Below are positions 896 through 60,664 of a stretch of 64,000 nt of DNA, piece after piece. Source of the DNA: Piromyces finnis finn (Eukaryota; Fungi; Neocallimastigomycota); the NCBI GenBank assembly GCA_002104945.1, contig MCFH01000062.1, positions 124,001 to 188,000 of the forward strand, read 5' to 3'. How positions within the stretch are numbered: the first letter of the stretch is position 1; every line of letters begins with the position of its first letter. Under the pieces are notes generated by a model, which had not been told where the DNA came from, searched no databases, and worked only from the letters and a program-made list of their open reading frames with translations. Made by a program: the position numbers and the translations under genes.

Positions 896-917
896 ATTTA
901 GTTATTTCTAGTATTCA

Positions 918-36097: not shown

Positions 36098-36444
36098 TGT
36101 AACGCTTCTTAGTTTAATTTTTTATTAATTAAGAAGCTTTGTTGATTCAACAGGTTTACACCCAAGAAAATAATTTATTTTGAAAAAATATATTTTGTTG
36201 ATTTTATTTTTTTCTTTTTATTAATTTTGTTTGTTAATAAAAACACAAAAGAAAAATTTTATATATTTTTTAATTTTATATCTATTTATATTTTTTCAAT
36301 ATTTAAATAATCCAATCAAAAAAATATATAATTATAAATCTTTAATTTGATTTGATTAAATAATTTAATTAATAAAATCTAAGAAAAATAATGAAACATT
36401 AATTATGTAAAACAATTACTAATTAATTTTGTTGGAAACAGTAT

Positions 36445-36498
36445 GAATCGAACCTATGATATTTTGATTCATAATCTTAGTACTCTACGACTAGGACA
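36445..36498 (-). promoter_or_regulatory. tRNA-derived A-box/B-box module in the K LTR
   Basis: Minus strand reads TGTCCTAGTCG, about 33 nt, then GGTTCGATTC (near-consensus B-box). Confidence 0.65.
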
Positions 36499-37346
36499 AA
36501 TTTCTAAATTTAATAATAATGTGTAAGAATTAATAATTATTTATTGAATAATTATTAATTCTTATTTAATTATTTTTTTAATTATTAAATTAATTAATTA
36601 TTTAAATTATTAGCATACATTCATTTAAATTACTATAAACAGTTATTTATATTAATATTAATTATTCATTTACTAAATGTAAAATTTATTTAATTATTAT
36701 ATTAATTAATTATTTATTTAATTTAGTAATTTATCTAAAATAATAGTAAACATTCATTTATTCTATTATTTAATAATTTTTGTATTACATTTTATAAGAA
36801 ACATTATGTATTTTATTTTACGTTTGTATTTTATATTTATGTATCGTATCTTGAAATAACTTATAGAAACAACTAGAAGATATAAATAAATATTAGGGCA
36901 ATCGGATATTAAGGTTTTTCCGAATTTTATTCGGTTTTACTTAATATTACGATGATTGATATATTAGTTATCAATCGAATATCTTTTTAGGTTTTTCTTC
37001 TAGTCTTTTCCTAAAAAGATTATTTGTTAAGATTAGAAATTTTTTATTAAACTTTAAATTATTAAAAAATTATAAATAAAAGAACTCTGGAATACCACTT
37101 AAAAATCCAGAGTTATTATTATAAGAACTATTATAATAAATAACCTTTACTAAAACAATATTAATAAAATATTTTAAATTAATTAACATTAAAAGTTTTG
37201 TGTTGTTTATTATACTTCCTTATAATAAACTCTTATTAAGATAAGTATAAAATTTTATTTTAACTTCTCAGTTTAATAATACTAATTATTATTAAATTGA
37301 AGATAATAATTATTATTATATAATATATATAATAATAATTATTACA

Positions 37347-37357
37347 ATAATAACTCT
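37347..37357 (+). promoter_or_regulatory. Self-priming-type PBS of element C
   Basis: ATAATAACTCT is the reverse complement of AGAGTTATTAT at 37109-37119 in the LTR. Confidence 0.8.
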
Positions 37358-37526
37358 CCTACATCAGATTGTTTAATAATTATTATTTTATTGGCATTAG
37401 AATTTCAATTCACAATATAAAATTTTGCAAAAAATAAATAAATACAATATATTAATAATTAATAATACATAAAAAAAAAATTTACCAATAAGAAAAAAAT
37501 ATATATATATATATTACCAATCAATA

Positions 37527-37561
<35 letters not shown>

Positions 37562-37818
37562 TTTTTTTTTTTACCAATCAATATATAAAAAAAAAAAAAA
37601 AAAAAATTGATAATAATAGTAATAATAATAGATAACAATAATAACAATAACAAAAGATATATAAACTGTATTATATTATAAAATATCAATATTTTCACAA
37701 ATAAGATATACTACAATACTACAGTATTAGTAAAAAAAAAATATAATAATAATATCAATAAATAATATTTTATTCTACACTGATCTTATTTTATTTTTAT
37801 AATTTAAAAATAGATAAT

Positions 37819-40800
37819 ATGGAATTCAATAGTAATAGTCAAGACATACAAGAAAATACTCCAAGGAGCGATAAGGCAACTGTTGAAACTTCCAAATTAA
37901 TAGCTACCCTAACAGATATTCTACCAGCATTCCTCTCGCCTAATGGGATTCTTGCAAAAGAATCAGAAACTCAAGACGCGCCTAACTTATTGGAAATTAT
38001 TGCTCAGAGTGAGGATTTCTTCGCAGAACATCCTAACTCTTTCTTGAGCGACGACAATAAGAGTTCCTTCATCATAAACAAGTTACATGGAACCACAAGG
38101 AAATGGGGGCTATCTCTATTAGCCGATGGAACTCTGAAGAATCTAAGTTATGATAATTTTAAGGAACTACTTTTAAGGAACTTTGATGGAGGGGATAGCA
38201 GAAAAGAAAAATATGTTCTCATGGAAAAGCTATGGAAGTTAAAGCAGCAACAGTTGGGGAAAGTAACTGACTACACTATTGAATTCCGCCGCATCGCAAG
38301 TAGGATAGGATGGCAAGACGAAGTTTTCATTGATATTATTGGAAAGGGCCTACTAGATCGAGTCCGCGAAGAGTATGACAAGATTGAAAAACCAAGAACC
38401 TTGTTTGAGGCTACCAATGCTATCATAGGTATCGATAGGAAATGCTACTTAGAAAGTTATATCAGACACAAACCAAGTAAAATTCATGGAAAACATCATA
38501 AATCTTTTGGAAGGAAAAAGCACGACTTAACTAAAGTTGAGAATAAGTTTACATCGTTCAACCAAAGAAAGGGCAAGACTAAGAGTGAAATTTTATCAGC
38601 AAATTACACTCCTAATAACAAAACCTCAATGACAACTGTTTTCACTATTCACATAAAGGGAAAAGTCATCAAATGTAATTTTTTGATTGACTCAGGATCT
38701 GCGAAAAGCTTTATCTGCCGAACCTTTGCTACCAACAACAAATTACCAACTTCAGGTCTCACCTCTCCCATCAATATTCAGCTTCCCAACAGTAAAAACA
38801 TGACCATCAGACATGTTACTACCCCTTTGAAGCTCAAGTTAATGGATCATGTTGAGGATTACGAATTTTTTATTGGTAATCTTCAACTTCACGGCATCTG
38901 TGGAATTCTAGGAAGGGATTGGCTTGCAATTCATAATCCTTATATTAATTTTAAAACAAATAAAATATATTTCTTGGATTATTATTGCAAAGATCATTGT
39001 AAGTCTTGTAGAGGTAATAAATTTGTTTTTAAATCAAAAGATGTTACAGCTACAATGGTTTATAATGAAAACTGTATTAACGACTCTATTATCCCGGAGA
39101 ATATCACAGAAGAAGAAATCCAAGACCACAACTACAACTGGTGCAACGCTATGATAGAGATGGGAACTATCATAGATGGGAAGGCTACCGAGGATGCAAC
39201 CATCAGCAAAGCTCTAGCCAAAGAAGACATTATAAAGAAGTACTACTCTAATTTAATGAAGGTGTTCGAAAAGACAGAAGCCGACAAACTTCCACCTCAT
39301 CGAGTTTATGACATTTCGATTGACTTAATACCAAATAGTCAATTATACTTTGGTCCAATATATTCATTAACAGTTGTCGAGTTAGAAACCTTAAAAAAAT
39401 ATATTAATGAAAATCTTGAAAAGGGTTTCATTCGAAAGTCCAAGTCACCAGCCGGTGCTCCTGTCTTGTTCGTGAAAAAACATGACGGATCCCTTCGACT
39501 ATGTGTAGACTACCGACGTTTGAACGCAGTTACCATCAGGAACAGCTACCCCCTTCCAAAGATTAATGATTTGATTGAATCATTCAAAAGTGCTTCAATC
39601 TTTACTAGGCTCGATCTTAGATCAGCCTATAATTTGGTTCGTGTCAAGGAAGGCCACGAATATTTAACTGCTTTCCGAACTCCGCTTGGACATTATGAAT
39701 ATCTTGTAATGCCCTTCGGTCTTCGTAACGCACCTTCGGTCTTTCAAAGATTCATACAAGATGTGCTTACAGATGTTATCGGTTCTTATGCTCAAGTCTA
39801 TTTAGATGATATAATTATTTATTCAAAAAATATAGACGAGCATATCAAGCATGTCAAGAAAATACTTCAACTCCTTATCGATAATGGCCTCTATGTGAAA
39901 CTCGAAAAATGCGATTTTCACGTTAAGTCAACTACATTCTTAGGATTCAATGTCTCTCCAAATGGCCTTACAATGGATCCTAACAAGGTGAAATCAATCT
40001 TGGATTGGCCAACGCCAAAAAACTTAAAAGAACTCCAGAGTTTTTTGGGTTTATGCAACTTTTACAGAAAGTTCATAAAAAACTTTGCCGAAATAATGGA
40101 ACCTCTTCGTAGACTACTAAAAGGTAACTCTGTTTTCAATTGGGATACTCAAGCTGAACGGTCCTTCAATCTACTTAAACAGGCTTTTAAAAATGACGAA
40201 TTACTTATCTTTCCAAATCCAGACAAAGAATTCGTAGTTGAATCAGACGCAAGTGACTTTGCGTTAGGATGCGTTCTCTCACAAATTAGCGATAAAGATA
40301 ATATGTTACATCCTGTAGCATTTTACTCAAGATCTTTGAACAAAGCTGAAGCTAACTACACTATCTATGATAAGGAGCTTCTTGCTGTTATTACTGCCTT
40401 TGATGTATGGAGACATCATTTAGAAGGCGCAAAGTTCCCAATTCAAGTTATCACCGATCACAAAAATCTACTCTATTGGAAAAAGCCTCAACGTCTTAAT
40501 CAGAGACAAATCCGCTGGGGCATGTTCTTGTCAAAATTTGATTATAGAATTTCTTTCAGACCCGGTGCTAGAAGTGGGAAGCCTGACTCGCTCTCAAGAA
40601 GGCCAGATTACAAACCAAATGAATATAAATCTAATGAATATATCATTCCTGAAAAGAATATTTGCTGTGCCACAAGAGATAATATTAATAATCTTATTGA
40701 GTCACAGAGGTCTGATAAATATTGTAGAAACATCCTTTCCAAAATCAAATCAGGGACTGAAATAAAAAGTGCCTTGTTCAAAATCGTCGACGGTGTTCTC

Positions 40801-41904
40801 CATTTTCAAAACCGTATATTAGTGCCATCTGCGTTGAAAGGAAACATATTAAAATCCTTTCATGATACTCCTACAAATGGTCACCAGGGTATTGACAAAA
40901 CGCTTGAAAAACTTAAACGTTACTACTGGTGGCCTAATATGAAAAATGATGTTAGAAATTTTGTCCTTTCATGTAAAACTTGTGGAAAGAACAAAATAAG
41001 AAGACATAAACCATATGGTAAGATTCAACCTCTCCCTGTTCCTAACAAGCCATGGGAAATAATAGGTGTAGACTTCATTGTCTACCTTCCAAGCTCTCAG
41101 GACTGCTCTTGTATTATGGTTGTATCGGATCATTTTACTAAAATGGTTCATTTAATTCCCTGCTCCGACGTACCCTCTGCTGACCTAACAGCTAAACTTT
41201 TGTTATTCAATGTATTTCGCTACCATGGATTTCCTAAGGTAATAGTTTCGGATCACGGTACCCAGTTTTCCTCCGAATATTGGACTTCGCTTTGTTCGGC
41301 CTTGCATGTAAAGCCTCGACTTGCTACAGCTCACCATCAACAGTCAAATGGACAAGTCGAGAGAGCCAACTCAGTGATTGAACAATATCTTCGCTGTTAC
41401 TGTTCTTCGGCACAACATGAATGGTTTTCTTATCTTCCCTTATGTGAGTTAGCTTATAACAATTCTCTTCACAAGTCTATAGGAATGTCGCCATTTTTCG
41501 CCAATTATGGGTTCCATCCGGAATGTAATATTGATTCTCCCCCGATTCTACTTAAGGATAACGCTTCATCTCTTACTAGAGATTGGTCGTCCCATTTTAA
41601 TGCCTTAAAAAAACAACTAAATCAAGCTAAAGAAGACTTCAAGAAGTATGGAGATAATCACAAATCCACGGGTCCAGAGCTTAAGGTCAATGATATGGTT
41701 TGGCTCAAGCGCCATTATTTTACTAATGAACCTGCTAAGAAGCTAGCTTCTCAATATTTAGGACCATTCCGCATTTCTGAAAAGAGGGAACGTATGAATT
41801 ACAGGCTTGAATTACCAGAAAATCTTAACATTCATCCTGTATTTCATATTTCACAATTGGAACCTTATACGAGTAGAAATCCTGAACTAAAGGAACATTT
41901 ATAA
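37819..41904 (+). CDS. Gag-Pol of element C (no Gag CCHC, no chromodomain)
   Basis: LIDSGS, LDLRSAY, YLDDIIIYS, ESDAS, HDTPTNGHQG...CKTC, GVDFIVYLP, SDHGTQF, GQVERAN. Ends right after HPVFHISQLEPY. Confidence 0.95.
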   Translation: MEFNSNSQDIQENTPRSDKATVETSKLIATLTDILPAFLSPNGILAKESETQDAPNLLEIIAQSEDFFAEHPNSFLSDDNKSSFIINKLHGTTRKWGLSLLADGTLKNLSYDNFKELLLRNFDGGDSRKEKYVLMEKLWKLKQQQLGKVTDYTIEFRRIASRIGWQDEVFIDIIGKGLLDRVREEYDKIEKPRTLFEATNAIIGIDRKCYLESYIRHKPSKIHGKHHKSFGRKKHDLTKVENKFTSFNQRKGKTKSEILSANYTPNNKTSMTTVFTIHIKGKVIKCNFLIDSGSAKSFICRTFATNNKLPTSGLTSPINIQLPNSKNMTIRHVTTPLKLKLMDHVEDYEFFIGNLQLHGICGILGRDWLAIHNPYINFKTNKIYFLDYYCKDHCKSCRGNKFVFKSKDVTATMVYNENCINDSIIPENITEEEIQDHNYNWCNAMIEMGTIIDGKATEDATISKALAKEDIIKKYYSNLMKVFEKTEADKLPPHRVYDISIDLIPNSQLYFGPIYSLTVVELETLKKYINENLEKGFIRKSKSPAGAPVLFVKKHDGSLRLCVDYRRLNAVTIRNSYPLPKINDLIESFKSASIFTRLDLRSAYNLVRVKEGHEYLTAFRTPLGHYEYLVMPFGLRNAPSVFQRFIQDVLTDVIGSYAQVYLDDIIIYSKNIDEHIKHVKKILQLLIDNGLYVKLEKCDFHVKSTTFLGFNVSPNGLTMDPNKVKSILDWPTPKNLKELQSFLGLCNFYRKFIKNFAEIMEPLRRLLKGNSVFNWDTQAERSFNLLKQAFKNDELLIFPNPDKEFVVESDASDFALGCVLSQISDKDNMLHPVAFYSRSLNKAEANYTIYDKELLAVITAFDVWRHHLEGAKFPIQVITDHKNLLYWKKPQRLNQRQIRWGMFLSKFDYRISFRPGARSGKPDSLSRRPDYKPNEYKSNEYIIPEKNICCATRDNINNLIESQRSDKYCRNILSKIKSGTEIKSALFKIVDGVLHFQNRILVPSALKGNILKSFHDTPTNGHQGIDKTLEKLKRYYWWPNMKNDVRNFVLSCKTCGKNKIRRHKPYGKIQPLPVPNKPWEIIGVDFIVYLPSSQDCSCIMVVSDHFTKMVHLIPCSDVPSADLTAKLLLFNVFRYHGFPKVIVSDHGTQFSSEYWTSLCSALHVKPRLATAHHQQSNGQVERANSVIEQYLRCYCSSAQHEWFSYLPLCELAYNNSLHKSIGMSPFFANYGFHPECNIDSPPILLKDNASSLTRDWSSHFNALKKQLNQAKEDFKKYGDNHKSTGPELKVNDMVWLKRHYFTNEPAKKLASQYLGPFRISEKRERMNYRLELPENLNIHPVFHISQLEPYTSRNPELKEHL

Positions 41905-43598
41905 AGGGAGCAATGTAAGAATTAATAATTATTTATTGAATAATTATTAATTCTTATTTAATTATTTTTTTAATTATTAAATTAATTAATTATTTAAATT
42001 ATTAGCATACATTCATTTAAATTACTATAAACAGTTATTTATATTAATATTAATTATTCATTTACTAAATGTAAAATTTATTTAATTATTATATTAATTA
42101 ATTATTTATTTAATTTAGTAATTTATCTAAAATAATAGTAAACATTCATTTATTCTATTATTTAATAATTTTTGTATTACATTTTATAAGAAACATTATG
42201 TATTTTATTTTACGTTTGTATTTTATATTTATGTATCGTATCTTGAAATAACTTATAGAAACAACTAGAAGATATAAATAAATATTAGGACAATCGGATA
42301 TTAAGGTTTTTCCGAATTTTATTCGGTTTTACTTAATATTACGATGATTGATATATTAGTTATCAATCGAATATCTTTTTAGGTTTTTCTTCTAGTCTTT
42401 TCCTAAAAAGATTATTTGTTAAGATTAGAAATTTTTTATTAAACTTTAAATTATTAAAAAATTATAAATAAAAGAACTCTGGAATACCACTTAAAAATCC
42501 AGAGTTATTATTATAAGAACTATTATAATAAATAACCTTTACTAAAACAATATTAATAAAATATTTTAAATTAATTAACATTAAAAGTTTTGTGTTGTTT
42601 ATTATACTTCCTTATAATAAACTCTTATTAAGATAAGTATAAAATTTTATTTTAACTTCTCAGTTTAATAATACTAATTATTATTAAATTGAAGATAATA
42701 ATTATTATTATATAATATATATAATAATAATTATTACATAAACTGTAATAATTATTATATATTTAATAATAATTATTATCTACAATATAATAATACAAAT
42801 CGTAATATGTATTATTAAATTGAGAAGTTTCTTAATAGTAAATAAAAATGAATACTTATCTTAAAGAGTTTATTATAAGTGAATTATAATAACAAACACA
42901 AAATATTAAGACTATCTTTAATGTAAATATTTTTTATGAATATAGTTTTTGAAAGGGTTATTTATTATAATTGTCTTAAAATAATAACTCTGGATTCTTT
43001 AGTGGAATTCCAGAGTCCTTATATTTATAATTTTTTGATAATTAAAGTTTAATAAAAAATTTCTAATCTTAACAAATAATCTTTTTAGGAAAAGACTAGA
43101 AGAAAAACCTAAAAAGATATTCGATTGATAACTAATATATCAATCATCGTAATATTAAGTAAAACCGATTAAAATTCGGAAAAACCTTAATATCCGATTG
43201 TCCTAATATGTATTTATATTTTCTAACTGTTTCTATAAGTTATTTCAAGATACGATACATAAATATAAAATACAAACGTAAAATAAAATATATAATGTTT
43301 CTTATAAAATGTAATACAAAAATTATTAATTAAAAAATAAATGAATGTTTACTATTATTTTAAATATATTACTAAATTAAATAAATAAATAATTAATATA
43401 GTAATTAAATAAATTTTAAATTAAGTAAATGAATAATTAATATCAATATAGATAAATGTTTATAGTAATTTAAATGAATGTATGCTAATAGTTTAAATAA
43501 ATAATTAATTTAATAATTAAAAAATAATTAAATAAGAATTAATTTATACAAAAAATAATTATTAATTCTTACATTGCTCCCTTTTAAAAAAAACATTG

Positions 43599-46500
43599 TT
43601 ATTCCAGTTCTGGATTTCTCTTTGTGTAAGGTTCCAATTGTGAGATATGAAATACCGGATGAATATGTAGGTTTTCAGGTAATTCAAGCCGGTAATTCAT
43701 TCTATTTCTCTCCTCGACGATTTTAAAAGGACCAAGATATTGAGATGAAAGTTTTTTAGCGGGTTCGTTGGTAAAGTAGTATCTTTTCAACCATACTAGA
43801 TCATCAACTTTAAATTTTGGCCCACTCAATTTCCTGTAATCACCGTATTTTTTAAAATCTTCTTTTGCCTTATTTAAGTGTTGTTGTAGAGCATTGAAAT
43901 GAGACGACCAGTCTCTAGTGAGATTCGAAGCATTGTCCTTGAGTAACGATGGAGGTGATTCAATAACAAAATTTGGGTGAAACCCATAATTGGCAAAAAA
44001 CGGTGATATGCCTAAGGATTTGTGAAGTGAGTTATTGTACGCAAGTTCACAGAGAGGTAGATAGAAACACCAATCACTTTGAGCAGAGGAGCAGTAGCAT
44101 CTAAGATATTGTTCTATGACCGAATTTATCCTTTCAATCTGGCCATTTGACTGTTGGTGATGGGCTGTGGCTAATCTTGGTTTTATATGTAGAGATGAAC
44201 ATAAAGATGTCCAAAATTCTGAGGAAAATTGGGAACCGTGATCAGAAATGATCATGTTCGGAAATCCATGGTAACGGAACACATTAAGTAAAAGGAGTTT
44301 GGCAGTAAGGTCGGCAGAAGGGACATCAGCACAAGGCACTAAGTGAACCATTTTTGTTAAATGGTCAGCAGTTACCATGATACATGTGCAATTTTGCGAA
44401 CTAGGTAGATAGACAATAAAATCTACACCAATAACTTCCCAAGGTTTATTTGGAATGGGCAGTGGCAGGATTTTCCCATACGGTTTGTGCCTGCGGGTCT
44501 TACATCTACAACATATATCGCATGAAAGGACATAATTTATAACGTCCTTTTTCAAATTTGGCCACCAATAGTAACGTTTAATTTTTTCTATGGTCTTATC
44601 AATCCCTTGATGGCCATTAATTGGTGAATCATGGAATGACTTAAGTATTTTTGCCTTGAGAGGTGAGGGAACGATAATACGATTTTGAAAATGGAGCACA
44701 CCATTGATGACGGTGAAAAGAGAACTTTTGACCTTGCCAGAGTTGTCTTTAATTTTTTGAAAAGTTTCCTTGCAAAATTTATCTGTTTTTTGGAATTGAA
44801 TTAAATGACTAATGTTATCATCTGTAGTACAGCAAAACACATCATCTTCAATTATTCTATGGCAGTCGTTATCATGCTTTATCTTGTAGTCTGATCTCCT
44901 TGATAAGGAGTCAGGTTTTCCACCCCTGGAACCAGGTCTATAAGAGATTCTATAGTCAAATCTTGATAGAAACATGCTCCAGCGGATTTGTCTTTGACTT
45001 AATAGTTGTGGTTTTTTGAAGTATAAAAGGTTTCTATGATCAGTAATAACTTGGACAGGAAATTTAGCACCCTCTAAGTGGTGCCTCCATGTATCGAACG
45101 CGGTAATAATGGCAAGGAGTTCCTTGTCATATATGGTGTAGTTACACTCAGCGTTATTTAATGAACGAGAATAAAATGCAATGGGGTGTAAGAGATTATC
45201 ATTATTACTTACCTGTGAAAGGATACATCCTATTGCAAAATCACTGGCGTCTGTTTCTACCACAAATTCCTTCTCTGGATCAGGAAAAATGAGTATTTCA
45301 TTAGTTAAAAAGGATTCTTTGAGCTTTGAAAAAGCAGTAGCAGCGATATTATCCCAATTAAACACAGAATTTTTTCTCAAGAGTTTGCGAAGTGGGTCCA
45401 TTTTTTCAGCAAAATTTTTTATAAACCTTCTGTAGAAATTACAGAGTCCTAGAAAGCTTTGAAGTTCTTTAATGTTTTTTGGTGTAGGCCATTCTAATAT
45501 AGATTTCACTTTGTTTTTATCCATTAGGAGTCCATTAGTAGAGACAGTAAAGCCTAAAAAGGTGGTTTCCTTTACGTGAAAATCGCACTTTTCTAATTTT
45601 ACATATAACCCATTATCGATTAAGGCTTTAAGAATTGTTCGAACATGACTAACATGATCCTTAAGGTTAGGAGAATATATTATAATGTCGTCCAAGTACA
45701 CCTGGGCAAATGAACCTAAAACTTCCGCGAGAACATCTTGTATGAATCTTTGAAAAACGGATGGTGCATTACGAAGACCAAAGGGCATCACAAGATATTC
45801 GTAATGACCGATAGGAGTTCTAAAAGCCGTGAGATATTCATGGCCTTCTTTAATACGTACAAGGTTGTACGCAGATCTTAAATCCAATCTGGTAAATATT
45901 GAAGCGCCTTTGAAAGATTCAATCATATCGTTTATTCTAGGAATAGGGTAACTGTTTCTAACTGTAATTGCGTTTAGTCGACGATAATCGACACATAAAC
46001 GAAGGCTTCCATCATGTTTCTTTACAAAAAGTACAGGAGCTCCGGCTGGTGACTTCGACTTCCGAATAAAGCCTTTGTTCAAATTCTCATTGACATATTC
46101 TCTTAAAGTTTTTTGTTCATCGATCGTAAGAGAATATATCGGACCAAAATATAACTGTCCACCTGGAATTAAGTCTATGGACATATCGTAGTCCCTATGA
46201 GGGGGGAGTACGTCGGCCTTTTGCTTCTGAAACACTGTCGTCAAGTCATAATAATATTTTTTTAGGATTTGAATATTATTATTTTCAGCATTATCTTGAA
46301 AGCTGTCTAATTCTAAGATAGTAGCACAAACATCCTGGTCGTACAGTTCGTTTTCAGAGATTGAATCCGGGATAATTGAGTCATTATTCAAACTATTTAC
46401 CATAGGAGCGGAGATTTCATCAGAATGGTATACAAACTTATTGCCTTTTGCTGAAGGACAGTGTTTACCGCAGTACTTCTCCAAAAAGTATATTTTGTTA

Positions 46501-47645
46501 GTCTTATAATTTAAGAAAGGATTATGAATGGAAAGCCAATCACGTCCAAGTATTCCTGAGATTCCCTGAAGAAGCAAGTTCCCGATGCAGAATTCATATT
46601 TTTCTTCATGATCCATAATTCTTAATCTTAATGGTTTGGTTGCCTGCTTAATAATCATACTCTTACCATTGGGTAAATGTATATTGATTGGGGATGTCAA
46701 CCCTACAGTAGGAATTTTATTTGCATTCGCGAAGGTTTTGCAAATAAAACTTCTAGCAGACCCTGAGTCAATAAGAAAGTTTATTTTTAAGTTTTTAGTT
46801 CCTAAGTTCAAAAAACACATAGTAGTTATTGTGTTCTGTTTATCAGGAGTGTAATTAGTAGTAGCAGAAAGAATACTATGTTTTGCTTTACTCTTTTTAT
46901 GTCTATGAAATGGGTTTCCATTTTCTGTTTTGTTTAATTCAGCTTTCTTTCTTCCAAATGATTTGCTGCCTTTCTTTTGCATTTCGGTATGTTTGTTTCT
47001 AATGCAATTTTCCAAAAAACATTTTTTGTCAAGGTTAATTATAATATTTGTAGCTTCAAATAAACTATTTGGCTTATCCATTTTATCGTATTCCTCACGT
47101 ACTCGATCAACGAGTCCTTTACCAATGATGTCAATAAAAACGTCATCTGGCCAACCGATTCTACTTGCCAACCTTCGAAATTCAATGGTATATTCAGTAA
47201 CTTTCCCAAGTTGAAGCTGCTTTAGGTTCCATAACTTATTTATAAGCATATATTTTTGCTTACGTTCGTCTCCGGTATCGAAGTTATTAAGGAGTAGTTT
47301 TTTAAATTCATTAAAACTGAGAGTCCTAAGCGTTCCATCGATCAAAAGGGATAAACCCCACTTTCTAGCAATTCCATTAAGTTTATTTATAACAAACGCA
47401 TTTTTTTCTTCGTCGCTAGTAAATGATTTAGGATGATCCTTAAAGAATTCTTCGCTTTGGATTAATGTCTCTAGGACATTCTCTCTAGTGTTAGCTTCCT
47501 TTTCCTTCGATAATACACCGTTCGGAGAGAAGAAAGTGGGGATGAATTCCGTCATGGCTTCGATTAATTTAGAAGTCACAGTGCTCTTAGGGAATTCATC
47601 AGCATTAACTTCAACAGAGTCCTTATCAATACCATTGAGTTCCAT
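43599..47645 (-). CDS. Gag-Pol of element D (no Gag CCHC, no chromodomain)
   Basis: LIDSGS, LDLRSAY, YLDDIIIYS, ETDAS, HDSPINGHQG...CDIC, SDHGSQF, GQIERIN, HPVFHISQLEPY then stop. Collinear with C. Confidence 0.95.
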   Translation of the reverse strand: MELNGIDKDSVEVNADEFPKSTVTSKLIEAMTEFIPTFFSPNGVLSKEKEANTRENVLETLIQSEEFFKDHPKSFTSDEEKNAFVINKLNGIARKWGLSLLIDGTLRTLSFNEFKKLLLNNFDTGDERKQKYMLINKLWNLKQLQLGKVTEYTIEFRRLASRIGWPDDVFIDIIGKGLVDRVREEYDKMDKPNSLFEATNIIINLDKKCFLENCIRNKHTEMQKKGSKSFGRKKAELNKTENGNPFHRHKKSKAKHSILSATTNYTPDKQNTITTMCFLNLGTKNLKINFLIDSGSARSFICKTFANANKIPTVGLTSPINIHLPNGKSMIIKQATKPLRLRIMDHEEKYEFCIGNLLLQGISGILGRDWLSIHNPFLNYKTNKIYFLEKYCGKHCPSAKGNKFVYHSDEISAPMVNSLNNDSIIPDSISENELYDQDVCATILELDSFQDNAENNNIQILKKYYYDLTTVFQKQKADVLPPHRDYDMSIDLIPGGQLYFGPIYSLTIDEQKTLREYVNENLNKGFIRKSKSPAGAPVLFVKKHDGSLRLCVDYRRLNAITVRNSYPIPRINDMIESFKGASIFTRLDLRSAYNLVRIKEGHEYLTAFRTPIGHYEYLVMPFGLRNAPSVFQRFIQDVLAEVLGSFAQVYLDDIIIYSPNLKDHVSHVRTILKALIDNGLYVKLEKCDFHVKETTFLGFTVSTNGLLMDKNKVKSILEWPTPKNIKELQSFLGLCNFYRRFIKNFAEKMDPLRKLLRKNSVFNWDNIAATAFSKLKESFLTNEILIFPDPEKEFVVETDASDFAIGCILSQVSNNDNLLHPIAFYSRSLNNAECNYTIYDKELLAIITAFDTWRHHLEGAKFPVQVITDHRNLLYFKKPQLLSQRQIRWSMFLSRFDYRISYRPGSRGGKPDSLSRRSDYKIKHDNDCHRIIEDDVFCCTTDDNISHLIQFQKTDKFCKETFQKIKDNSGKVKSSLFTVINGVLHFQNRIIVPSPLKAKILKSFHDSPINGHQGIDKTIEKIKRYYWWPNLKKDVINYVLSCDICCRCKTRRHKPYGKILPLPIPNKPWEVIGVDFIVYLPSSQNCTCIMVTADHLTKMVHLVPCADVPSADLTAKLLLLNVFRYHGFPNMIISDHGSQFSSEFWTSLCSSLHIKPRLATAHHQQSNGQIERINSVIEQYLRCYCSSAQSDWCFYLPLCELAYNNSLHKSLGISPFFANYGFHPNFVIESPPSLLKDNASNLTRDWSSHFNALQQHLNKAKEDFKKYGDYRKLSGPKFKVDDLVWLKRYYFTNEPAKKLSSQYLGPFKIVEERNRMNYRLELPENLHIHPVFHISQLEPYTKRNPELE

Positions 47646-47947
47646 TATATTTAAATATAATTGTTATATAATATATATCACTAAAAAAAAAATTTTTTTA
47701 TTAATAAAATTTATATTATATATTTGAATACTTGTATATTTAAAATCACTATTATAAGAAAATAAACTATATGTCTTTTAATATTATCACTATATTTAAT
47801 TATTATTATTATTTGTCTTAAAATTTAAATTTTTTTTTTTTTTTTTTTTTTTTAACTAATTAATTGGAAATTTAATTTTTTTTTTTAAACTATTTAATTG
47901 GCAATTTAATTTTTTTTTTTTTTTTAAAACTATTTAATTGGTAATTT

Positions 47948-47984
<37 letters not shown>

Positions 47985-52765: not shown

Positions 52766-52911
52766 TAATTCCATTCTTGTATACTCATTTGTTCTGGAAG
52801 TTTCGTTATATTGTAACGATGTAAGAAATAATAATTATTTCAATCTAAATAATTAATATTTTTTATTAGTTTAATAATTTATTTATTTATTTAGTTACAT
52901 AATATTCTATA

Positions 52912-53180
52912 CACTTAATTTATTTAGTTAAATAATAATTTATACACTTAATTTATTTATTTAATTTATTTAGTTAAATAATATTTTATGCACTTAATTT
53001 ATTTATTTAATTTATTTAGTTAAATAATATTTTATGCACTTAATTTATTTATTTAATTTATTTAGTTAAATAATATTTTATACACTTATTTTATTTATTT
53101 AATTTATTTAGTTAAATAATATTTTATGCACTTAATTTATTTATTTAATTTATTTAGTTAAATAATATTTTATACATTTG
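52912..53180 (+). repeat. 46-bp tandem repeat within LTR H (about 5.7 copies)
   Basis: CACTTAATTTATTTATTTAATTTATTTAGTTAAATAATATTTTAT(G/A) at 52945, 52991, 53037, 53083, 53129. Confidence 0.9.
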
Positions 53181-54622
53181 ATTTTTAAATAATATTTATA
53201 TATAAGAATCCTGTAATTTAATTGTGTATTACTAATTAATTTACATATTATATCTAAACACGGATTTACTTTAGGAAATCGGTATTTTAAGGTTTTCCCG
53301 ATTATTATAATTGGTTTTACTTAAAATTTACACGATGACTAATATGATTAGAATATTGGTCGAAAACTTGTTTAGGTTTTTCTTCTAGTCTTTTCCTAAA
53401 CATTTAATTTGTTAAGATTAGAACCCATTTATTTAACCTTAATTTCTAATAAAAATATAAATAAGACACTCTTGAAATTCTTTAGAAATTCAAGAGTTAT
53501 TATTATAAGAAAAATTAATTATAATAAATAACAAATAATTCTATTTTAATAAAAAACATATTATTAAAACATAATTTTAATACATCTCACTCTTATCCTC
53601 CTTCCCATTTGTGTTTTTGTTGTTTATTATAAATCCTTATAATAAACTCGCTAAGTTCTAATCTTAATTCTATATTTAATTTTTTATTATTTTTTTCTTT
53701 CTATATACATATAATTTAATATTAAATTTTAATATTGAGTTATCAATAAGTAATTATATTGTACTATTTATTATATACATTACAATATAATTTGTAAAAT
53801 ATTGTATTAGTTAAATGTATTAGTTAAATAATGTATTTAATACGTATGTAGAACAATGTATAATGTATTGAATTAATGTACCGTAAATTTTACAAAAATT
53901 TACATCACAATACATTAACATAAATTTATGTAAATTTAATTTTATGATAAGATAAAGTTTTGATGATAAAATAAAATTTTAAAATTAAATAATTTTTAAC
54001 CAATAAATATTTGAGATAAGAAAAAATTTTTTTTATAAACTAAGCCTCAAAATTAGAAATAAATAAATTAAATATATGTTTGAAATATAATCAACCATAT
54101 AGTAAATAAATCAAAACTTTATTTTAAGTTTAGAAAATTCTTTAGTAAATAAATTGAATTTAAATAGTTTAATACAAATAATTTCTTTTAATAAATGTAT
54201 AAATGTAAACAATGTAAAATTATAATATTAAAACATGTATATTAGAATTTATTCAATTTATTTAAAAAGTATAAATAAAGAAAATTTCTCAACTATTGAA
54301 ACGATAGTTGGAAAATAGTAATTAATACAATTGTATCATTAGTATTAATAATATTAGATTATTAATAAAGCTTATAATAAAACATTTTTTATTTAATTGA
54401 AAACTGATTACCTAGCGAAGGCTCTGGTTAAATAACCTTCGTGGTAAAGTAATCAGCAGTTGTCATAGTTTAGAAGATAAAGTTATTATTTAAATAAATA
54501 AAAAAGTATTAAAAAATAAATTGGAATTTTTTCTTTCTTTTGTTTTGTATTGTTGTTTTGTTAGCACAGACCTAAATCCAATAATTTAATTTAAAGGTTA
54601 GATTTAAATTAAATATTTTACA

Positions 54623-54633
54623 ATTTTCCAACT
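54623..54633 (+). promoter_or_regulatory. Self-priming-type PBS of element G
   Basis: ATTTTCCAACT is the reverse complement of AGTTGGAAAAT at 54306-54316. Confidence 0.8.
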
Positions 54634-54761
54634 TTTTAGAATAGTGGATTTACCTTTGTGTGGGAAATAAATAAATAAATAAATAAATAAAAAAAAAAAA
54701 AAAAAAAATTTAAATAGTGAGAATTTAATATTAGAATTAAATTCGGGGATATATATATGTG

Positions 54762-54794
<33 letters not shown>

Positions 54795-54901
54795 GATTTT
54801 AGAATAGAAAGGAATTTGTAGGATTTGGATAATCGAGGATTAAAATTTTGGAAATAAGGAATAATTTAGATTGTATTGTTTGGTGGATAATATATTTTAG
54901 T

Positions 54902-57900
54902 ATGAACGGGGAATATAGGTATATCGACAACTGTAATGGTAATGGAGTAGCTGGAATCAGTGACGACGATTCTGAGGCTAGCTCCATGGAAATAGAACAT
55001 GAGGATGGCGAAATCGTCAACGCCAGGGATAACCTCATACCAAGACCACCGAAGTTTTATGGAAAAAGGAATGAGTTAGCAAGTTTCTTTGCTAAACTCG
55101 AAAAATATTTCAAGTATAATCTAAGACAGAATGCTACCGAAGCTTACAAGATTGATGTACTTAGTTGCTATTTAGAAGGACCCGCCGCCGAATGGTATGC
55201 CGACTTGGAGAAAGAAGAAAGCCCTTTAATAAAATCTTATGAAGACCTTAAAGCCGCAATGCAAGCAAGGTACCGAACGTGCACGAGTTCTGATGTGGCT
55301 AATAGAAGATTAACGAAGCTCAACTACAAACAATTCAAAAGTGTGATGGATTACTGCGACTGTTTCGAAAAAACTTCTAGGGACTCGTCTTTTGACGATG
55401 AAGCCAAGATACATTTCTTTGTAGAAGGATTGCCGCCGTCTGTTCAGGAGAAGACAAAACTAGTATATCCTAAGATAAGAAAGCTGTATGATCTAATCAA
55501 TACTGTAGCTGCCAATATTGAAGAAGACTGGAGAATCTACGGAAAGGACCCAATGAATATAGATGGAGAAAGAGGAAGAAGATATAACCGGAATCTAGGA
55601 AAGCGACTCTACCAAGGGAATTATGGGATGAAATTCAACAACTACCGAGACTTTCATCACGAGGAAAAAGTACAAAAGACCAAGAAATGCTTCATTTGTA
55701 AATCAACAGGACATTTGAAGAAGGATTGCCCAATGCTCAAAGATAAATTGGCAAACCGCCCAAAAGCATTCATGATCAAGGAAAACAGAAAACAGCACTT
55801 ATTGAATGTTTTCGATGTTGTACTTCATGTCAATCGAGGAATCTCACTAAATGCGTTAGTTGACTCAGGATCCGACTTGGAATTCATGGATTGGAAAACG
55901 GTCAATAAATATAGAATACCAATCCAAAGGATGATGAAAGACAAGTTTGTGGAAGGACTGAGAGGAAATGGATTACTGAAGTATGAAACGATCCCGTTGA
56001 TCATGTCTATCGGCAATCACAAGGAGTCTATTCAATTTTATATTACGACTCTACCTTCAGACGTATCACTTATTTTAGGAAACAAATGGCTAAGAAAACA
56101 TGATCCGATTATCAGTTTCAAGAATCAAAAATTAGAGTTTAAGTCTGAATTTTGTAAGACGAATTGTTGCGCTACTGATGAAGAAATAAATGAAAGAATT
56201 GAACAAAATAAATTAAAAGAAGAGGAAGATAAAAGAAAGAGATTAGAGTTAGCTGAAGAAATTATTAATAATTATAAGAATAGTTTAGTTATTAGAGATA
56301 GTAAACTTAAAAATAAAGAAAATGTATTAGTAATAGAAAAGAAAAAGAAAAAGTCATGTATAAATAAAAAATGTAAAACATCAAAATTAAATAAAATTCT
56401 TCATCAAAAATACTTAGTATGTTGTGCGATTACAAGTGATAATGATGGTACACCTGAAGTCCCAAATGAATACAAAGAATTTAAAAATGTATTTGATGAA
56501 ATTGAGTGTAATGAGTTACCTCCTCATCGAATATATGACTGTAAGATTAAATTAAAGGATGATAATGAATTATTTTATGGACCATTATATCCTCTAACCG
56601 AGGAAGAGAGGGAAACGTTAAAGGAATATTTAAAAGAAAATCTAGAAAAAGGATTCATAAGACCCTCAACTTCACCTGCTGGAGCACCTGTACTGTTCGT
56701 TAGGAAAAAGGATGGAACTTTAAGATTGTGTGTTGACTACCGAAGACTCAATGAAAACACAATTAGGGATTCATATCCGTTACCTCTTATATCCGAATTA
56801 TTCGATAGGTTAAGAGAAGCTAAAATTTTTACTAAACTTGATCTCAAGTCTGCTTATAATCTAGTCCGAATAAATAAAGGCGATGAATATAAAACTGCAT
56901 TTAGGACAAGATTCGGTCACTTTGAATATCTTGTCATGCCGTTCGGATTAAAAAACGCTCCTGCAACCTTCCAACATTTTATCAATGATGTCCTCGGGGA
57001 ATATTTGGATGAATTCGCGTTTTCTTATATTGATGATATTCTTATCTATTCAAAAGACTTAGAAGAACACCGAACTCACGTAAAGAAAGTCCTTAAAAAA
57101 TTACAAGAAAATGGGTTATATGTAAAATTAAGCAAATGCGAATTTGAAACGAATAAAACGTCATTTTTAGGTCACATAATTTCGGACAAGGGCATCTCCA
57201 TGGATCCAAAGAAGGTAGAAGCAATTATGAATTGGCCAATTCCAAAGACTGTAAAGGAAGTTCAATCATTTTTGGGTTTATGCAATTACTATAGAAGATT
57301 CATTCCGAACTTTGCAGAAATAGCGAAACCTTTGCACAATCTAACAAAGAAAAATGTAGTTTTTGACTGGACTATAATTTGTAATAATGCTTTTGAGAAG
57401 TTAAAGCAGTGCTTCACTGAAGAACCAATTTTAGTACATGCCGATCCAGAATTACCTTATATAGTGGAAACTGATGCTAGTGATTTTGCAATTGGTGCAG
57501 TATTATCTCAAAGAATAAACAATAAGGAACTACATCCAATTTGTTATTTTTCAAGAGGACTTACTAAGTCAGAAAAGAACTATCCGATCTACGATAAAGA
57601 ATTATTAGCGGTTATATGTGCACTTAAAGAATGGAGACATTATTTGGAAGGAGCTAAGCATCAATTCACTGTGTTTACAGATCACAAGAATCTTACCTTT
57701 CCAAGAAAGCCTGAATTATTATCTCAAAGACAAATTCGATGGAATTTGTTCTTAACTCGTTACGACTTCAAACTCCAATACAGACCAGGAAAAGAGGGAG
57801 GAAAACCGGACTCATTTTCAAGAAGACCTGACTTTCAAAAAGAGGAAATTAAAGATGAAGAAACATTTTCTTGCTTAACTATAAAAGAAATTAAGGAAAA

Positions 57901-59386
57901 CTTATGTTGTATTGCAATCCAAGGAAATCTTAAAGAAGAATTAATCAAAGAAGTTAAAGAAGATACGGAAATACAAGAATTAACAAAAATTCTACAAGGG
58001 AATTCTATTGCAAGCAGAAAGTATAAAAAGCTTATGAAGAACTTTAAATTAAATGAAGAAGGTATTCTTTTGTATAAAGGATTAATTTTCGTACCAACTA
58101 AAATGAGAGAAAACATAATTTCAATTCATCATGATAATCCAGTTCATGGCCATTTTGGTATTATCAAAACCAAAGAATTAATAACAAGAAATTTCATTTG
58201 GTTAAACATGACTCAAGATATAGTAAAGTATATAGCTTCTTGCAAGACTTGTGGTGCAGCTAAAGACAATCGCCATAAACCTTATGGATTATTGCAACCT
58301 TTACCTACTCCTAGTAGACCTTGGTCCTCGGTATCGATGGATTTCATAACTGATTTACCAAGATCTCATCAGAAAACGGTTATAATGGTTGTGGTTGACA
58401 GACTAACAAAAATGGCTCACTTTATTCCATTCAGAATGATTCCAACTGCTCAAATTGCAGCAGATGTCTTCTTTAGAGAAATTTTCCGATTACATGGATT
58501 GCCAGACGAAATTATATCTGATAGAGGAACGCAATTCACTTCTGAATTTTGGCAACGTTTATGTTGCCTATTAAATATCAAACATAATGTTTCAAGTGCT
58601 CACCATCCACAATCTGATGGTCAAACTGAACGAGTTAATAGCATTCTAGAACAATTCTTAAGATGTTATATCAATAAAAGAAAAGATAACTGGATGAATC
58701 TCTTACCTTATGCGGAATTTGCATACAATAATACACTACAACAATCGATTAACCAAACACCTTTCTTTGCTAACTATGGTCAAAATCCAAGATTTGATTT
58801 AGAAATTCCAGCTGATAGTGGTAATAGAAGTGCTAACCGTCACGCCTCTCAAATGCAAAACAACATTAAATTTTTAAAGAAAAATTTAGAAAAAGCTAAA
58901 CAAAGATACAAGAAATATGCTGATTGTATAAGACTTATTGGTCCGAAATTGAGAATTGGTGATTTAGTTTGGTTAAAGCGTCCTGATTTACTTCCTAAAG
59001 GACCTCCTAAATTAACTGATAAAAAACTTGGACCTTTTGAAATCATCGAAAAGACTGGACCAGTTTCTTATAAGTTAAGATTACCTGAGTCTTTTAGATG
59101 TCATCCTGTTTTCCATATCTCGAATTTAGAACCTTTTGTAGTGAGAGAAAATAGTGATAATTTGCAACATTCTATCAAGATACCTAATATCGCTACTGAT
59201 TCATCTGTAGAAAGAATTCCATTGAAAATAGTTAGTGAAAAAATTGTCAATGGAATCAAGTATTATTTCATGGTTTGGAAAGATCATCTTCCTTCAGAAA
59301 GTTCTTGGCTTAGAGAAGATGAAATTGAGGACCCTCAAATGATTCAAGAATTTCTTAAACACAAGTCGCTCAGGGGCTCGACTTAA
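54902..59386 (+). CDS. Gag-Pol of element G (Gag-CCHC, PR, RT, RH, IN, chromodomain-like)
   Basis: First ATG at 54902 (the track starts at a TTG). CFICKSTGHLKKDC, LVDSGS, YIDDILIYS, ETDAS, HDNPVHGHFG...CKTC, SDRGTQF, YFMVWKDHLPSESSWLREDEI. Confidence 0.95.
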   Translation: MNGEYRYIDNCNGNGVAGISDDDSEASSMEIEHEDGEIVNARDNLIPRPPKFYGKRNELASFFAKLEKYFKYNLRQNATEAYKIDVLSCYLEGPAAEWYADLEKEESPLIKSYEDLKAAMQARYRTCTSSDVANRRLTKLNYKQFKSVMDYCDCFEKTSRDSSFDDEAKIHFFVEGLPPSVQEKTKLVYPKIRKLYDLINTVAANIEEDWRIYGKDPMNIDGERGRRYNRNLGKRLYQGNYGMKFNNYRDFHHEEKVQKTKKCFICKSTGHLKKDCPMLKDKLANRPKAFMIKENRKQHLLNVFDVVLHVNRGISLNALVDSGSDLEFMDWKTVNKYRIPIQRMMKDKFVEGLRGNGLLKYETIPLIMSIGNHKESIQFYITTLPSDVSLILGNKWLRKHDPIISFKNQKLEFKSEFCKTNCCATDEEINERIEQNKLKEEEDKRKRLELAEEIINNYKNSLVIRDSKLKNKENVLVIEKKKKKSCINKKCKTSKLNKILHQKYLVCCAITSDNDGTPEVPNEYKEFKNVFDEIECNELPPHRIYDCKIKLKDDNELFYGPLYPLTEEERETLKEYLKENLEKGFIRPSTSPAGAPVLFVRKKDGTLRLCVDYRRLNENTIRDSYPLPLISELFDRLREAKIFTKLDLKSAYNLVRINKGDEYKTAFRTRFGHFEYLVMPFGLKNAPATFQHFINDVLGEYLDEFAFSYIDDILIYSKDLEEHRTHVKKVLKKLQENGLYVKLSKCEFETNKTSFLGHIISDKGISMDPKKVEAIMNWPIPKTVKEVQSFLGLCNYYRRFIPNFAEIAKPLHNLTKKNVVFDWTIICNNAFEKLKQCFTEEPILVHADPELPYIVETDASDFAIGAVLSQRINNKELHPICYFSRGLTKSEKNYPIYDKELLAVICALKEWRHYLEGAKHQFTVFTDHKNLTFPRKPELLSQRQIRWNLFLTRYDFKLQYRPGKEGGKPDSFSRRPDFQKEEIKDEETFSCLTIKEIKENLCCIAIQGNLKEELIKEVKEDTEIQELTKILQGNSIASRKYKKLMKNFKLNEEGILLYKGLIFVPTKMRENIISIHHDNPVHGHFGIIKTKELITRNFIWLNMTQDIVKYIASCKTCGAAKDNRHKPYGLLQPLPTPSRPWSSVSMDFITDLPRSHQKTVIMVVVDRLTKMAHFIPFRMIPTAQIAADVFFREIFRLHGLPDEIISDRGTQFTSEFWQRLCCLLNIKHNVSSAHHPQSDGQTERVNSILEQFLRCYINKRKDNWMNLLPYAEFAYNNTLQQSINQTPFFANYGQNPRFDLEIPADSGNRSANRHASQMQNNIKFLKKNLEKAKQRYKKYADCIRLIGPKLRIGDLVWLKRPDLLPKGPPKLTDKKLGPFEIIEKTGPVSYKLRLPESFRCHPVFHISNLEPFVVRENSDNLQHSIKIPNIATDSSVERIPLKIVSEKIVNGIKYYFMVWKDHLPSESSWLREDEIEDPQMIQEFLKHKSLRGST

Positions 59387-60262
59387 GAAGAGGGGAATGT
59401 AAAATATTGTATTAGTTAAATGTATTAGTTAAATAATGTATTTAATACGTATGTAGAACAATGTATAATGTATTGAATTAATGTACCGTAAATTTTACAA
59501 AAATTTACATCACAATACATTAACATAAATTTATGTAAATTTAATTTTATGATAAGATAAAGTTTTGATGATAAAATAAAATTTTAAAATTAAATAATTT
59601 TTAACCAATAAATATTTGAGATAAGAAAAAATTTTTTTTATAAACTAAGCCTCAAAATTAGAAATAAATAAATTAAATATATGTTTGAAATATAATCAAC
59701 CATATAGTAAATAAATCAAAACTTTATTTTAAGTTTAGAAAATTCTTTAGTAAATAAATTGAATTTAAATAGTTTAATACAAATAATTTCTTTTAATAAA
59801 TGTATAAATGTAAACAATGTAAAATTATAATATTAAAACATGTATATTAGAATTTATTCAATTTATTTAAAAAGTATAAATAAAGAAAATTTCTCAACTA
59901 TTGAAACGATAGTTGGAAAATAGTAATTAATACAATTGTATCATTAGTATTAATAATATTAGATTATTAATAAAGCTTATAATAAAACATTTTTTATTTA
60001 ATTGAAAACTGATTACCTAGCGAAGGCTCTGGTTAAATAACCTTCGTGGTAAAGTAATCAGCAGTTGTCATAGTTTAGAAGATAAAGTTATTATTTAAAT
60101 AAATAAAAAAGTATTAAAAAATAAATTGGAATTTTTTCTTTCTTTTGTTTTGTATTGTTGTTTTGTTAGCACAGACCTAAATCCAATAATTTAATTTAAA
60201 GGTTAGATTTAAATTAAATATTTTACATAATTACTACAAACGAATCATAGAAATAAAGAAAT

Positions 60263-60315
60263 TGTCTTAGTGGTTAGTAACTAAGACTTTGGTCCGAATG
60301 TCTTGAGTTCGAGAC
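60263..60315 (+). promoter_or_regulatory. tRNA-derived A-box/B-box module in the K2 LTR
   Basis: TGTCTTAGTGG, 33 nt, GTTCGAGAC; the spacing equals G19 to G53 of a tRNA. Confidence 0.7.
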
Positions 60316-60664
60316 TTCTAAATTACTTTTTTTTTATTTTTATTTTAATTTTTTTATTTTGATTTTTTATCAACTCGAAATTCTTTGATTGGTTAAGAAA
60401 TTTAAGTTGTAAAAAATCTTTTAGATTAATTTTAAAAATTTTTATATAAATACGAGTGGATTTTTCTAAATTTAAAAAAAATTGAGTTTTTATTAATTAA
60501 TAAATTATTGTTAAACACTAACCTATTAAGTTAAAATTTGTGTGTTTTTAATAATAATTTTAAATATTAATAATTAACAGTAAGATAAAAGTGTTTTATA
60601 TTTACTAAGTTATTTTAGTAAATTGTTATAAATTTTTTTATTGTTAAGAACACATTTCTTTACA

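Follow-up and report, generated by a model that had tools for sequence, protein, structure and literature searches.

Long terminal repeats (LTRs) with Pol III promoter boxes have been described in short retrotransposons. The LTRs of Helenus, also named TRIMp3, include tRNA-like A and B boxes, and those of Cassandra and Ajax include 5S sequence (Kojima, 2024; PMC10886601). Both Helenus and Cassandra are TRIMs, non-autonomous and 0.3–1.3 kb long, with presumed transcription by Pol III; fungal Helenus elements have target-site duplications (TSDs) of 5 bp and are linked to Copia helpers (PMC10886601). So far, tRNA-like LTRs are known only from the non-autonomous Helenus TRIMs, and the Results and Discussion of that paper make no mention of Helenus LTRs as targets of other elements.

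Other retrotransposons home to Pol III genes. Integration of Ty3 in S. cerevisiae is tethered by TFIIIB (bioRxiv 10.1101/2021.07.27.453949; review, PMC5911963), and in Dictyostelium integration profiling of TRE5-A and DGLT-A has addressed cryptic Pol III sites (PMC5391098, PMC5006619). These two phenomena, which are unconnected in the literature searched, meet in the element described here. The LTRs of K, a retrotransposon of the anaerobic gut fungus Piromyces finnis finn, carry a tRNA-gene-type module, their tips are a hot spot for insertion of other LTR families, and the same families are found upstream of tRNA genes with the same spacings.

The K element and its Pol III-type module

K is an autonomous, chromodomain-bearing Ty3/gypsy LTR retrotransposon (chromovirus) of 6.5 kb. 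Its polyprotein of 1480 aa contains the Pfam domains Ty3_capsid, RVT_1, RT_RNaseH, Integrase_H2C2, rve, SH3_Tf2-1 and Chromo (E = 7e-16), which is the gypsy order with a C-terminal chromodomain. No Pfam protease family is listed for the polyprotein; the protease region aligns with the protease of element C (see below). The LTRs are 429 nt long with TG..CA ends (TGTAA...TTTACA), the polypurine tract (PPT) is GGAGGAGGACCA, and copy L082 is flanked by the TSD CCTAG. K is a true LTR family, as a preliminary description of this DNA had proposed: copies pair about 6.1–6.3 kb apart, a PPT precedes the 3' LTRs and the TSD is 5 bp.

The K copies of the window, which is the whole 64,000-nt stretch analysed, are as follows; positions relative to +1 refer to a putative tRNA-like start site placed from the A box alone, in a module that is not recognised as a tRNA.

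60239..60664, plus strand: K2 5' LTR, positions 4-429; LTR position 1 corresponds to -20
60256..60335, plus strand: K2 Pol III-type module; putative +1 at 60256, with A box TGTCTTAGTGG (60263-60273), B box AGTTCGAGACT (60306-60316) and T9 (about 60326-60334)
61933..62964, plus strand: gag ORF of the K2 element (Ty3_capsid, Retrotrans_gag), downstream of the K2 5' LTR
C192:197646-198070, beyond the window: K2 3' LTR
52812..52819, plus strand: detached K2 LTR 5' tip TGTAACGA, cut off from the K2 body by H and G
36098..36521, minus strand: K1, a diverged K-like LTR body; A box 36498-36488, B box 36454-36444, putative +1 at 36505
48898..48909, minus strand: detached K1 5' tip TGTAACGAATCT, cut off from the K1 body by D and C
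206..1633, minus strand: K4 array, consisting of K4 LTR 5' parts with modules, split by F solo LTRs; tandem duplication with a 711-nt unit

The K2 LTR family has at least 40 copies, of which the intact ones begin with TGTAACGAATCATAGAAATAAAGAAATTGTC followed by TTAGTGG, and the PPT ..GGAGGGCCA precedes its 3' LTRs. Internal sequence of the K family follows the K2 LTR. K1-type LTRs are present in about eight near-full copies in the genome.

The module occupies LTR positions 21-100, at the 5' edge of U3, and has the layout of a type-2 Pol III promoter: an A box from +8, a B box about 43 nt further and often a downstream T-run (T9 at about +71 to +79 in K2, just T4 in K4). CCAAT- and TATA-like motifs lie downstream of it. 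The K2 A box matches TRGCNNAGTGG at 10 of 11 positions, and the core of the K2 B box (G53 T54 T55 C56 G57 A58 .. C61) is intact. On the minus strand, K1 has the A box TGTCCTAGTCG and the B box GGTTCGATTCA, and K4 has A boxes at 1606-1596 and 895-885 and B boxes at 1562-1552 and 851-841; all the boxes that the preliminary description had read near the 5' ends of K1, K2 and K4 are thus present. Genome-wide, the module pattern has at least 239 matches in 56 Mb and a reversed control pattern has none, indicating that the module is not a chance occurrence.

The module was initially called tRNA-mimicking. This holds for the promoter boxes of a tRNA gene, but not for the fold: ARAGORN finds no gene in it and no match to Rfam RF00005 is obtained at E <= 10. 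The idea that the module is a genuine tRNA gene is rejected because neither ARAGORN nor Rfam gives a cloverleaf or tRNA-model score, even at permissive E-values. Global alignment to the Arg, Glu, Thr, Gly and Ala tRNAs of this genome gives no convincing parent. An anticodon-loop-like CTTTGAG/CTTTGGT in the module is just a hint of Gln(TTG). By eye, no obvious complementarity is seen between the primer-binding-site region and the module, as would be needed for K to prime on its own module, and a metagenome scan gives no match to the exact module.

In having a Pol III promoter of small-RNA-gene origin inside the LTR, with conserved A and B boxes and usually no functional tRNA, K resembles Helenus and Cassandra as defined in PMC10886601; with 6.5 kb and a 1480-aa polyprotein, it is no short non-coding TRIM. 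The tRNA-like LTR itself is therefore not new, given the tRNA-derived LTR sequence that this paper describes in Helenus TRIMs, whereas no report of such LTRs as targets is found.

Insertions at the K tips of the window

Six foreign insertions lie at the tips of K1, K2 and K4.

52820..53792, with the last 6 nt at 60233-60238, plus strand: H, solo LTR of a C/D-related family, inserted in K2
53793..60227, plus strand: G, full-length Ty3/gypsy element whose two 830-nt LTRs are identical; ORF 54848-59386
42744..48892, minus strand: D, full-length element of the C family, in opposite orientation to C; ORF 43599-47645
36522..42738, plus strand: C, full-length Ty3/gypsy element without chromodomain; 825-nt LTRs differing at 1 base; ORF 37819-41904
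918-1412: F2, F solo LTR in K4; TSD TGAAT at -15..-11
206-699: F1, F solo LTR in K4, following K4 positions 1-12

H has a perfect TSD, AACGA (52815-52819 / 60239-60243), corresponding to K2 LTR positions 4-8, or -17..-13, and D has a perfect TSD, TAAAC (42739-43 / 48893-97), at -21..-17 of K1. For these two and F2, the junction positions first assigned stand with clean TSDs. F1 had been placed at -13..-9, which is deduced from one side. C adjoins K1 at -16, with its end 16 nt upstream of +1, and is flanked by GTTTA / CATTA on the strand of K, with no clean TSD found, so the interval -16..-12 given for C is one-sided. Inversion or recombination between C and D was considered as the source of the missing TSD and set aside as a misfit with the 5-nt spacer. 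G likewise has a perfect TSD, TAATT (53788-92 / 60228-32), at -28..-24 relative to the K2 +1 as first described; this site, 28 nt upstream of +1, is within the last 11 nt of H and not in K. The clean TSDs of H, G, D and F2 indicate insertion into K, with the site of G itself inside the end of H.

A genome-wide hot spot at the K tip

Among 57 K copies picked by a 28-nt core alone, foreign LTR ends break 18 inside a tip window of 22 nt, and only three breaks are found in the next 382 nt. Breaks are thus about 100-fold denser at the tip (P = 2e-20). About 96 of the at least 239 modules in the genome were read. The hits come from several LTR families in both orientations and affect several K subfamilies. 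In two abundant LTR families that have no module, 0/40 and 1/40 copies are shortened at the 5' side versus 12–14/40 in K (P = 5e-6 for the 12/40 of K2 versus the module-less families), with alignment start coordinates as the sole basis for the control families. The landing spot proposed from the window is therefore a strong and specific hot spot; insertion along K is not uniform, and the clustering is absent from LTRs without A and B boxes.

Clustering of this kind could also arise by retention or copying, if insertions elsewhere in K were lost, or if a few composites of K and insert were multiplied by duplication or by retrotransposition of K. Some junctions are indeed duplicated copies (L028/L029, L086/L092, L097/L117), the K4–F unit of the window is tandemly duplicated, and one string is common to six F-to-K junctions. 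However, the 18 exact F-to-K junctions, found among 226 F termini, comprise 11 distinct strings, which points to many independent events, and families, positions and K subfamilies are many. In L098/L099 and L087/L088, the 5' LTR is hit and the 3' LTR of the pair is unbroken, which excludes copying of those junctions by retrotransposition. In addition, solo LTRs are mostly neutral DNA, and differential loss would not yield breaks that are locally 100-fold in excess and spaced according to family. Retention or copying is thus very improbable as the source of the hot spot.

Two further comparisons were dropped. A striking-looking asymmetry between 5' and 3' LTRs (1/33 3' LTRs hit) is not used because the flanks available do not separate a hit 3' LTR from a solo LTR, and C-to-T variants of the B box are not related to hit status because the mutations are undatable relative to the insertions.

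The same families upstream of tRNA genes

At least nine families of termini found at K tips also lie upstream of real tRNA genes, each with its own spacing. Such termini are present in 20 of 45 distinct upstream contexts, at 11–16 nt or 30 nt from the gene (tRNA-Arg, Thr, Gly, Glu and Ala). Targeting of tRNA genes is widespread in the 40 tRNA loci sampled. F lies at 11–12 nt at tRNA genes and at 10–15 nt in K, and the '..CCTTAACA' family at 14–16 nt and 13–16 nt, respectively. For the G family, the terminus ..CAATATTTTACA lies 29–30 nt upstream of other K modules and, at a tRNA-Ala gene, 30 nt upstream. Median spacings (K/tRNA) are 12/11.5 for F+, 12/12 for F-, 14.5/15 for CC, 15/14 for CD, 29/30 for G, 15.5/15.5 for TATCA and 12/12 for TTGACA, and across families the two spacings are correlated (Spearman 0.79). 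F, C/D/H, G and others thus lie in the narrow windows that characterize tRNA-gene-targeting LTR retrotransposons; as had been anticipated for F, C/D/H and G, these families are abundant near tRNA genes at the family-specific distances seen in K. Literature searches found no prior report of tRNA-gene targeting in Neocallimastigomycota.

Among the inserting elements, C, D and G share with Ty3 the Ty3/gypsy type, the 5-bp TSDs and a landing window of a few nucleotides just upstream of tRNA genes, with both orientations found. Unlike Ty3, distinct families are involved here, in an early-diverging fungus, and their spacings from the mature 5' end are several (11–16 nt and about 30 nt). No Pfam-detectable chromodomain is present in C and D, and tethering by TFIIIB is proposed for these elements.

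The shared spacings also bear on the idea that integrases recognise the sequence or shape of the K tip (TGTAAYGAATACTAGAAAT...) itself, without Pol III factors. The tip is well conserved across K subfamilies and relatives, and the 10-mer AATCATAGAA occurs both in K2 (positions 8-17) and in the flank upstream of some tRNA-Arg genes, as such recognition would predict. Yet each of the at least nine families keeps its own distance at tRNA genes whose upstream sequence is unrelated to the tip, and G, at 29–30 nt, lands outside the LTR in whatever DNA flanks it, be it the end of H, a PPT or host DNA. Direct recognition of the tip is therefore quite improbable.

Proposed targeting of K through Pol III factors

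The pattern is best explained if the K module assembles TFIIIC and TFIIIB in vivo and thereby attracts Ty3-like, Pol III-directed integrases, a reading drawn from sequence to which we assign a probability of roughly 80%. TFIIIC would bind the A and B boxes and place TFIIIB on the tip of the LTR and on the adjoining upstream DNA. The integrases of the tRNA-targeting families (F, C/D/H, G, '..CCTTAACA', '..GCGTATCA', '..TTTTTGACA' and others) would then be tethered at K as at real tRNA genes, and each K copy would be an additional, mobile landing site from which nests grow; it might also, a possibility raised in the preliminary description, draw insertions away from real tRNA genes. Three RNA runs of uncertain type, present as contigs that do not resolve transcript starts or ends, give no coverage of 60161-60465 and so speak neither for nor against transcription of the K2 module.

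The pattern of insertions is evidence, from natural events in vivo, that cells treat an A/B-box module on a transposon much as they treat a tRNA gene; for the binding of Pol III factors its support is indirect. As in Dictyostelium, the positions at which retrotransposons insert are taken to report Pol III complexes in vivo away from annotated tRNA genes; the extra sites there are on an rDNA element, which is host DNA, whereas here they are on another mobile retrotransposon. K offers a simple system for how mobile elements create or compete for 'safe' integration sites, and a way to ask whether TFIIIC sites borne by transposable elements serve as chromatin barriers.

Retention of the module in K and its relatives

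Relatives of K with 61–70% protein identity are found in other anaerobic-fungal assemblies. The PPT and the TGTAACGAA tip are conserved in them, and they retain A/B-box modules whose sequence differs from that of K.

This retention matters for the possibility that the module is an inert relic, such as an old SINE or tRNA pseudogene in an ancestral LTR, and that the insertions simply follow from elements favouring LTR ends in general. The module is not a functional tRNA, and an origin by SINE insertion into an LTR is proposed for Helenus in the paper by Kojima (PMC10886601), both of which fit a relic. The boxes, however, persist in divergent relatives, including those with another module sequence, and the two abundant control families have no such end preference, leaving this explanation with hardly any probability.

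Instead of being a relic, the module may be kept by K as a Pol III promoter or as a TFIIIC barrier that shields its own Pol II promoter. A more speculative extension, which we regard as possible but rather unlikely, is that the K lineage has long kept the module since it is useful to K, either as a portable TFIIIC/TFIIIB barrier for its own promoter in chromodomain-targeted heterochromatin or as a small-RNA promoter. As a side effect, new 'safe-harbour' sites would enlarge the niche of the guild of tRNA-targeting retrotransposons, and one element family would then shape where others can live. In one of the K relatives, a foreign '..TTTTATCA' end is present at K position 6.

K elements and their Pol III-type module

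The LTR family K, which carries an A-box/B-box module near the LTR 5' end, is an autonomous chromovirus because its structure comprises LTR pairs, a polypurine tract (PPT), a target-site duplication (TSD) and an ORF running from gag to chromodomain. A genome search with the K2 LTR (window 60228-60664) returned at least 40 copies, many paired at 6.1-6.3 kb distance; the window K2 is a 5' LTR with its partner 3' LTR just beyond the window end. Intact copies aligned in register start with TGTAACGAATCATAGAAATAAAGAAATTGTC, then TTAGTGGTTAGTAACTAAGAC..., and the PPT (..GGAGGGCCA or ..GGAGGAGGACCA) precedes 3' copies. In the reference K4 element (L082), the two 429-nt LTRs are identical, the TSD is the 5-bp CCTAG, and a single 1480-aa ORF encodes gag, RT, RNase H and integrase together with a strong chromodomain. 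This structure rules out K as a SINE and the K repeats as tRNA gene duplicates.

The inferred tRNA-like +1 sits 20 nt downstream of LTR position 1. The A box (TGTCTTAGTGG; 10/11 match to TRGCNNAGTGG) begins at +8, and the B box (AGTTCGAGAC) begins 43 nt after the A-box start and retains the invariant G53 T54 T55 C56 .. A58 .. C61; in K2, a T9 run follows at the place of a tRNA-gene terminator. ARAGORN and Rfam made no tRNA call on the module, permissive thresholds included; its likeness is to a tRNA-gene promoter and not to the tRNA itself. Its 28-nt core has at least 239 genome matches, against 0 for the reversed control.

Polyproteins at 61-70% identity to K are found in other assemblies and metagenomes. 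In three relative contigs, the PPT and TGTAACGAA tip are kept, with an A box 20-35 nt on and then a B box, in differing module sequences (TGTCTTAGTGG..AAGTTCGACAC, TGGCTTACTCG..GGGTTCAATAC and TGGTTCAGTGG..GGGTTCGACTC). In a fourth contig (L126, GCA_016295205.1), neither a PPT nor a full tip can be recognised; its module reads TGTCCTAGTGG..AAGTTCGATCC, and a foreign '..TTTTATCA' end lies at K position 6. The presence of the boxes despite differing module sequence suggests that they are a maintained feature of the K lineage. The leading guess is that K, a heterochromatin-seeking chromovirus, would keep them as a barrier or insulator.

Insertions at the K tip

In the 56-Mb genome of this anaerobic gut fungus, the window (C192:124001-188000) is very AT-rich, and nested Ty3/gypsy elements make up most of it.

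Features of the nest (negative positions relative to the inferred +1 of K)
H: solo LTR in K2 LTR positions 4-8; perfect TSD AACGA at -17..-13
52812-52819: K2 tip TGTAACGA, detached from the K2 LTR
G: identical LTRs; perfect TSD TAATT at -28..-24, within the last 11 nt of H
D: perfect TSD TAAAC at -21..-17 of K1
48898-48909: K1 tip
C: adjoins K1 at -16
F2: TSD TGAAT at -15..-11 of K4
F1: junction with K4
12357-30641: large element, 3' LTR at 29307-30641
51188-51634, plus strand: truncated F LTR directly after ..CTTCGTATCACAAATAC (region 51100-51634)

The junction anatomy in the preliminary description, which placed six insertions just upstream of K modules, was essentially right: the TSDs of H, D and F2 stand, but that of G lies in H, C is without a clean TSD and F1 is known from one side only. 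No TSD of C is present at 42739-42743 / 36517-36521, the flanks being TAATG and TAAAC; its LTRs are near-identical (1 mismatch/825), and it lies back-to-back with D, whose 5-nt TSD is the sole spacer. The K4+F unit is in tandem duplicate (206-1633, period 711 nt), and each unit holds ~35 nt of a chromovirus pol gene in reverse complement; therefore, the duplication postdates the joining of K4 to a truncated chromovirus (1634-4301).

The proposed clustering of insertions at the module tip was borne out genome-wide. Among 57 K4-type modules, sampled solely by a perfect 28-nt core, 22 are 3' LTRs with intact PPT, 17 have an intact tip and unique flanks, and 18 are cut by another LTR's terminus, which lies at LTR positions 3-11 except where the inserted element is G (9 nt upstream). 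The next 382 nt of the same LTRs contain only 3 breaks, making tip breaks ~100-fold denser (binomial P = 2e-20). In the K2 set, 14/40 are cut at positions 2-12 and a further 2 have a G terminus ~10 nt upstream; in all, the reading covered ~96 of the 239 or more modules, and some K junctions are duplicate copies. By one criterion applied to alignment tables only, 5'-shortened alignments number 0/40 and 1/40 in two abundant module-less LTR families versus 12/40 for K2 (P = 5e-6). Genome-wide, 18/226 F 3' termini have a K module at matching distance downstream, with 11 distinct junction strings, indicating many independent events.

Shared spacing at tRNA genes

The same LTR termini recur upstream of real tRNA genes in 40 sampled loci around Arg-TCT, Thr-TGT, Gly-TCC, Glu-TTC and Ala-TGC genes, and family spacings correlate between K and tRNA genes (Spearman 0.79).

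Distance of LTR ends (nt) upstream of tRNA genes; from the inferred +1 of K
F ..GGCCACAAATATTTCTTACA, reverse ..CCTTTTACA: 11-12; 10-15
..CCTTAACA: 14-16; 13-16
C/D: 14; 15-17, single outlier 23
..GCGTATCA: 15-16; 15-16
..TTTTTGACA: 12; 12
..ATTATTACA: 16; 15
G: 30; 29-30

The sampled tRNA genes have upstream DNA that is unrelated to the K tip. A protein complex positioned from the A/B boxes would therefore account best for the landmark that both share. In yeast, Ty3 integrase is tethered by TFIIIB, which covers -15 to -32 (bioRxiv 10.1101/2021.07.27.453949). The comparative insertion-site evidence thus supports well, with a probability of roughly 80%, the K module as a landing pad for other LTR elements. 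Whether in consequence or not, K copies might also draw insertions away from real tRNA genes, as the preliminary description proposed.

The C-terminus encoded by the G ORF (54848-59386) is still weakly chromodomain-like (Pfam E = 6e-4), and G lands ~30 nt upstream; C (ORF 37819-41904) and D proteins stop right after the SH3 domain, and these land ~14-21 nt upstream. These differing integrase tails may be the basis of the differing spacings.

Non-autonomous Helenus TRIMs, fungal ones included, have tRNA-like LTRs, and according to the same paper tRNA-like parts are present in 'not a few' Repbase LTRs (PMC10886601). TE-borne modules as targets were found neither in that paper's Results and Discussion nor by term searches of a review of Pol III-directed targeting (PMC5911963), and elements that target tRNA genes in Neocallimastigomycota did not come up in the literature searched.

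Other features of the nest and tRNA loci

The ..CTTCGTATCACAAATAC before the truncated F LTR has its match upstream of tRNA-Arg(TCT) at loci elsewhere in the genome (L059/L060), and the tRNA gene is absent beside this LTR; 51100-51634 looks like a remnant of a real tRNA locus within the same nest. Long AT-rich tandem arrays lie within the H LTR (52824-53270; 13/33/46-nt periods) and just 5' of the large element's 3' LTR (28940-29308; 9/12-nt periods). Some tRNA genes form fixed dicistron-like pairs, 7-10 nt apart (Glu-TTC then Arg-TCT; Gly-TCC then Thr-TGT; L043, L045, L061-L075), in many near-identical copies, and tRNA-Glu has an internal deletion at L048-L050.
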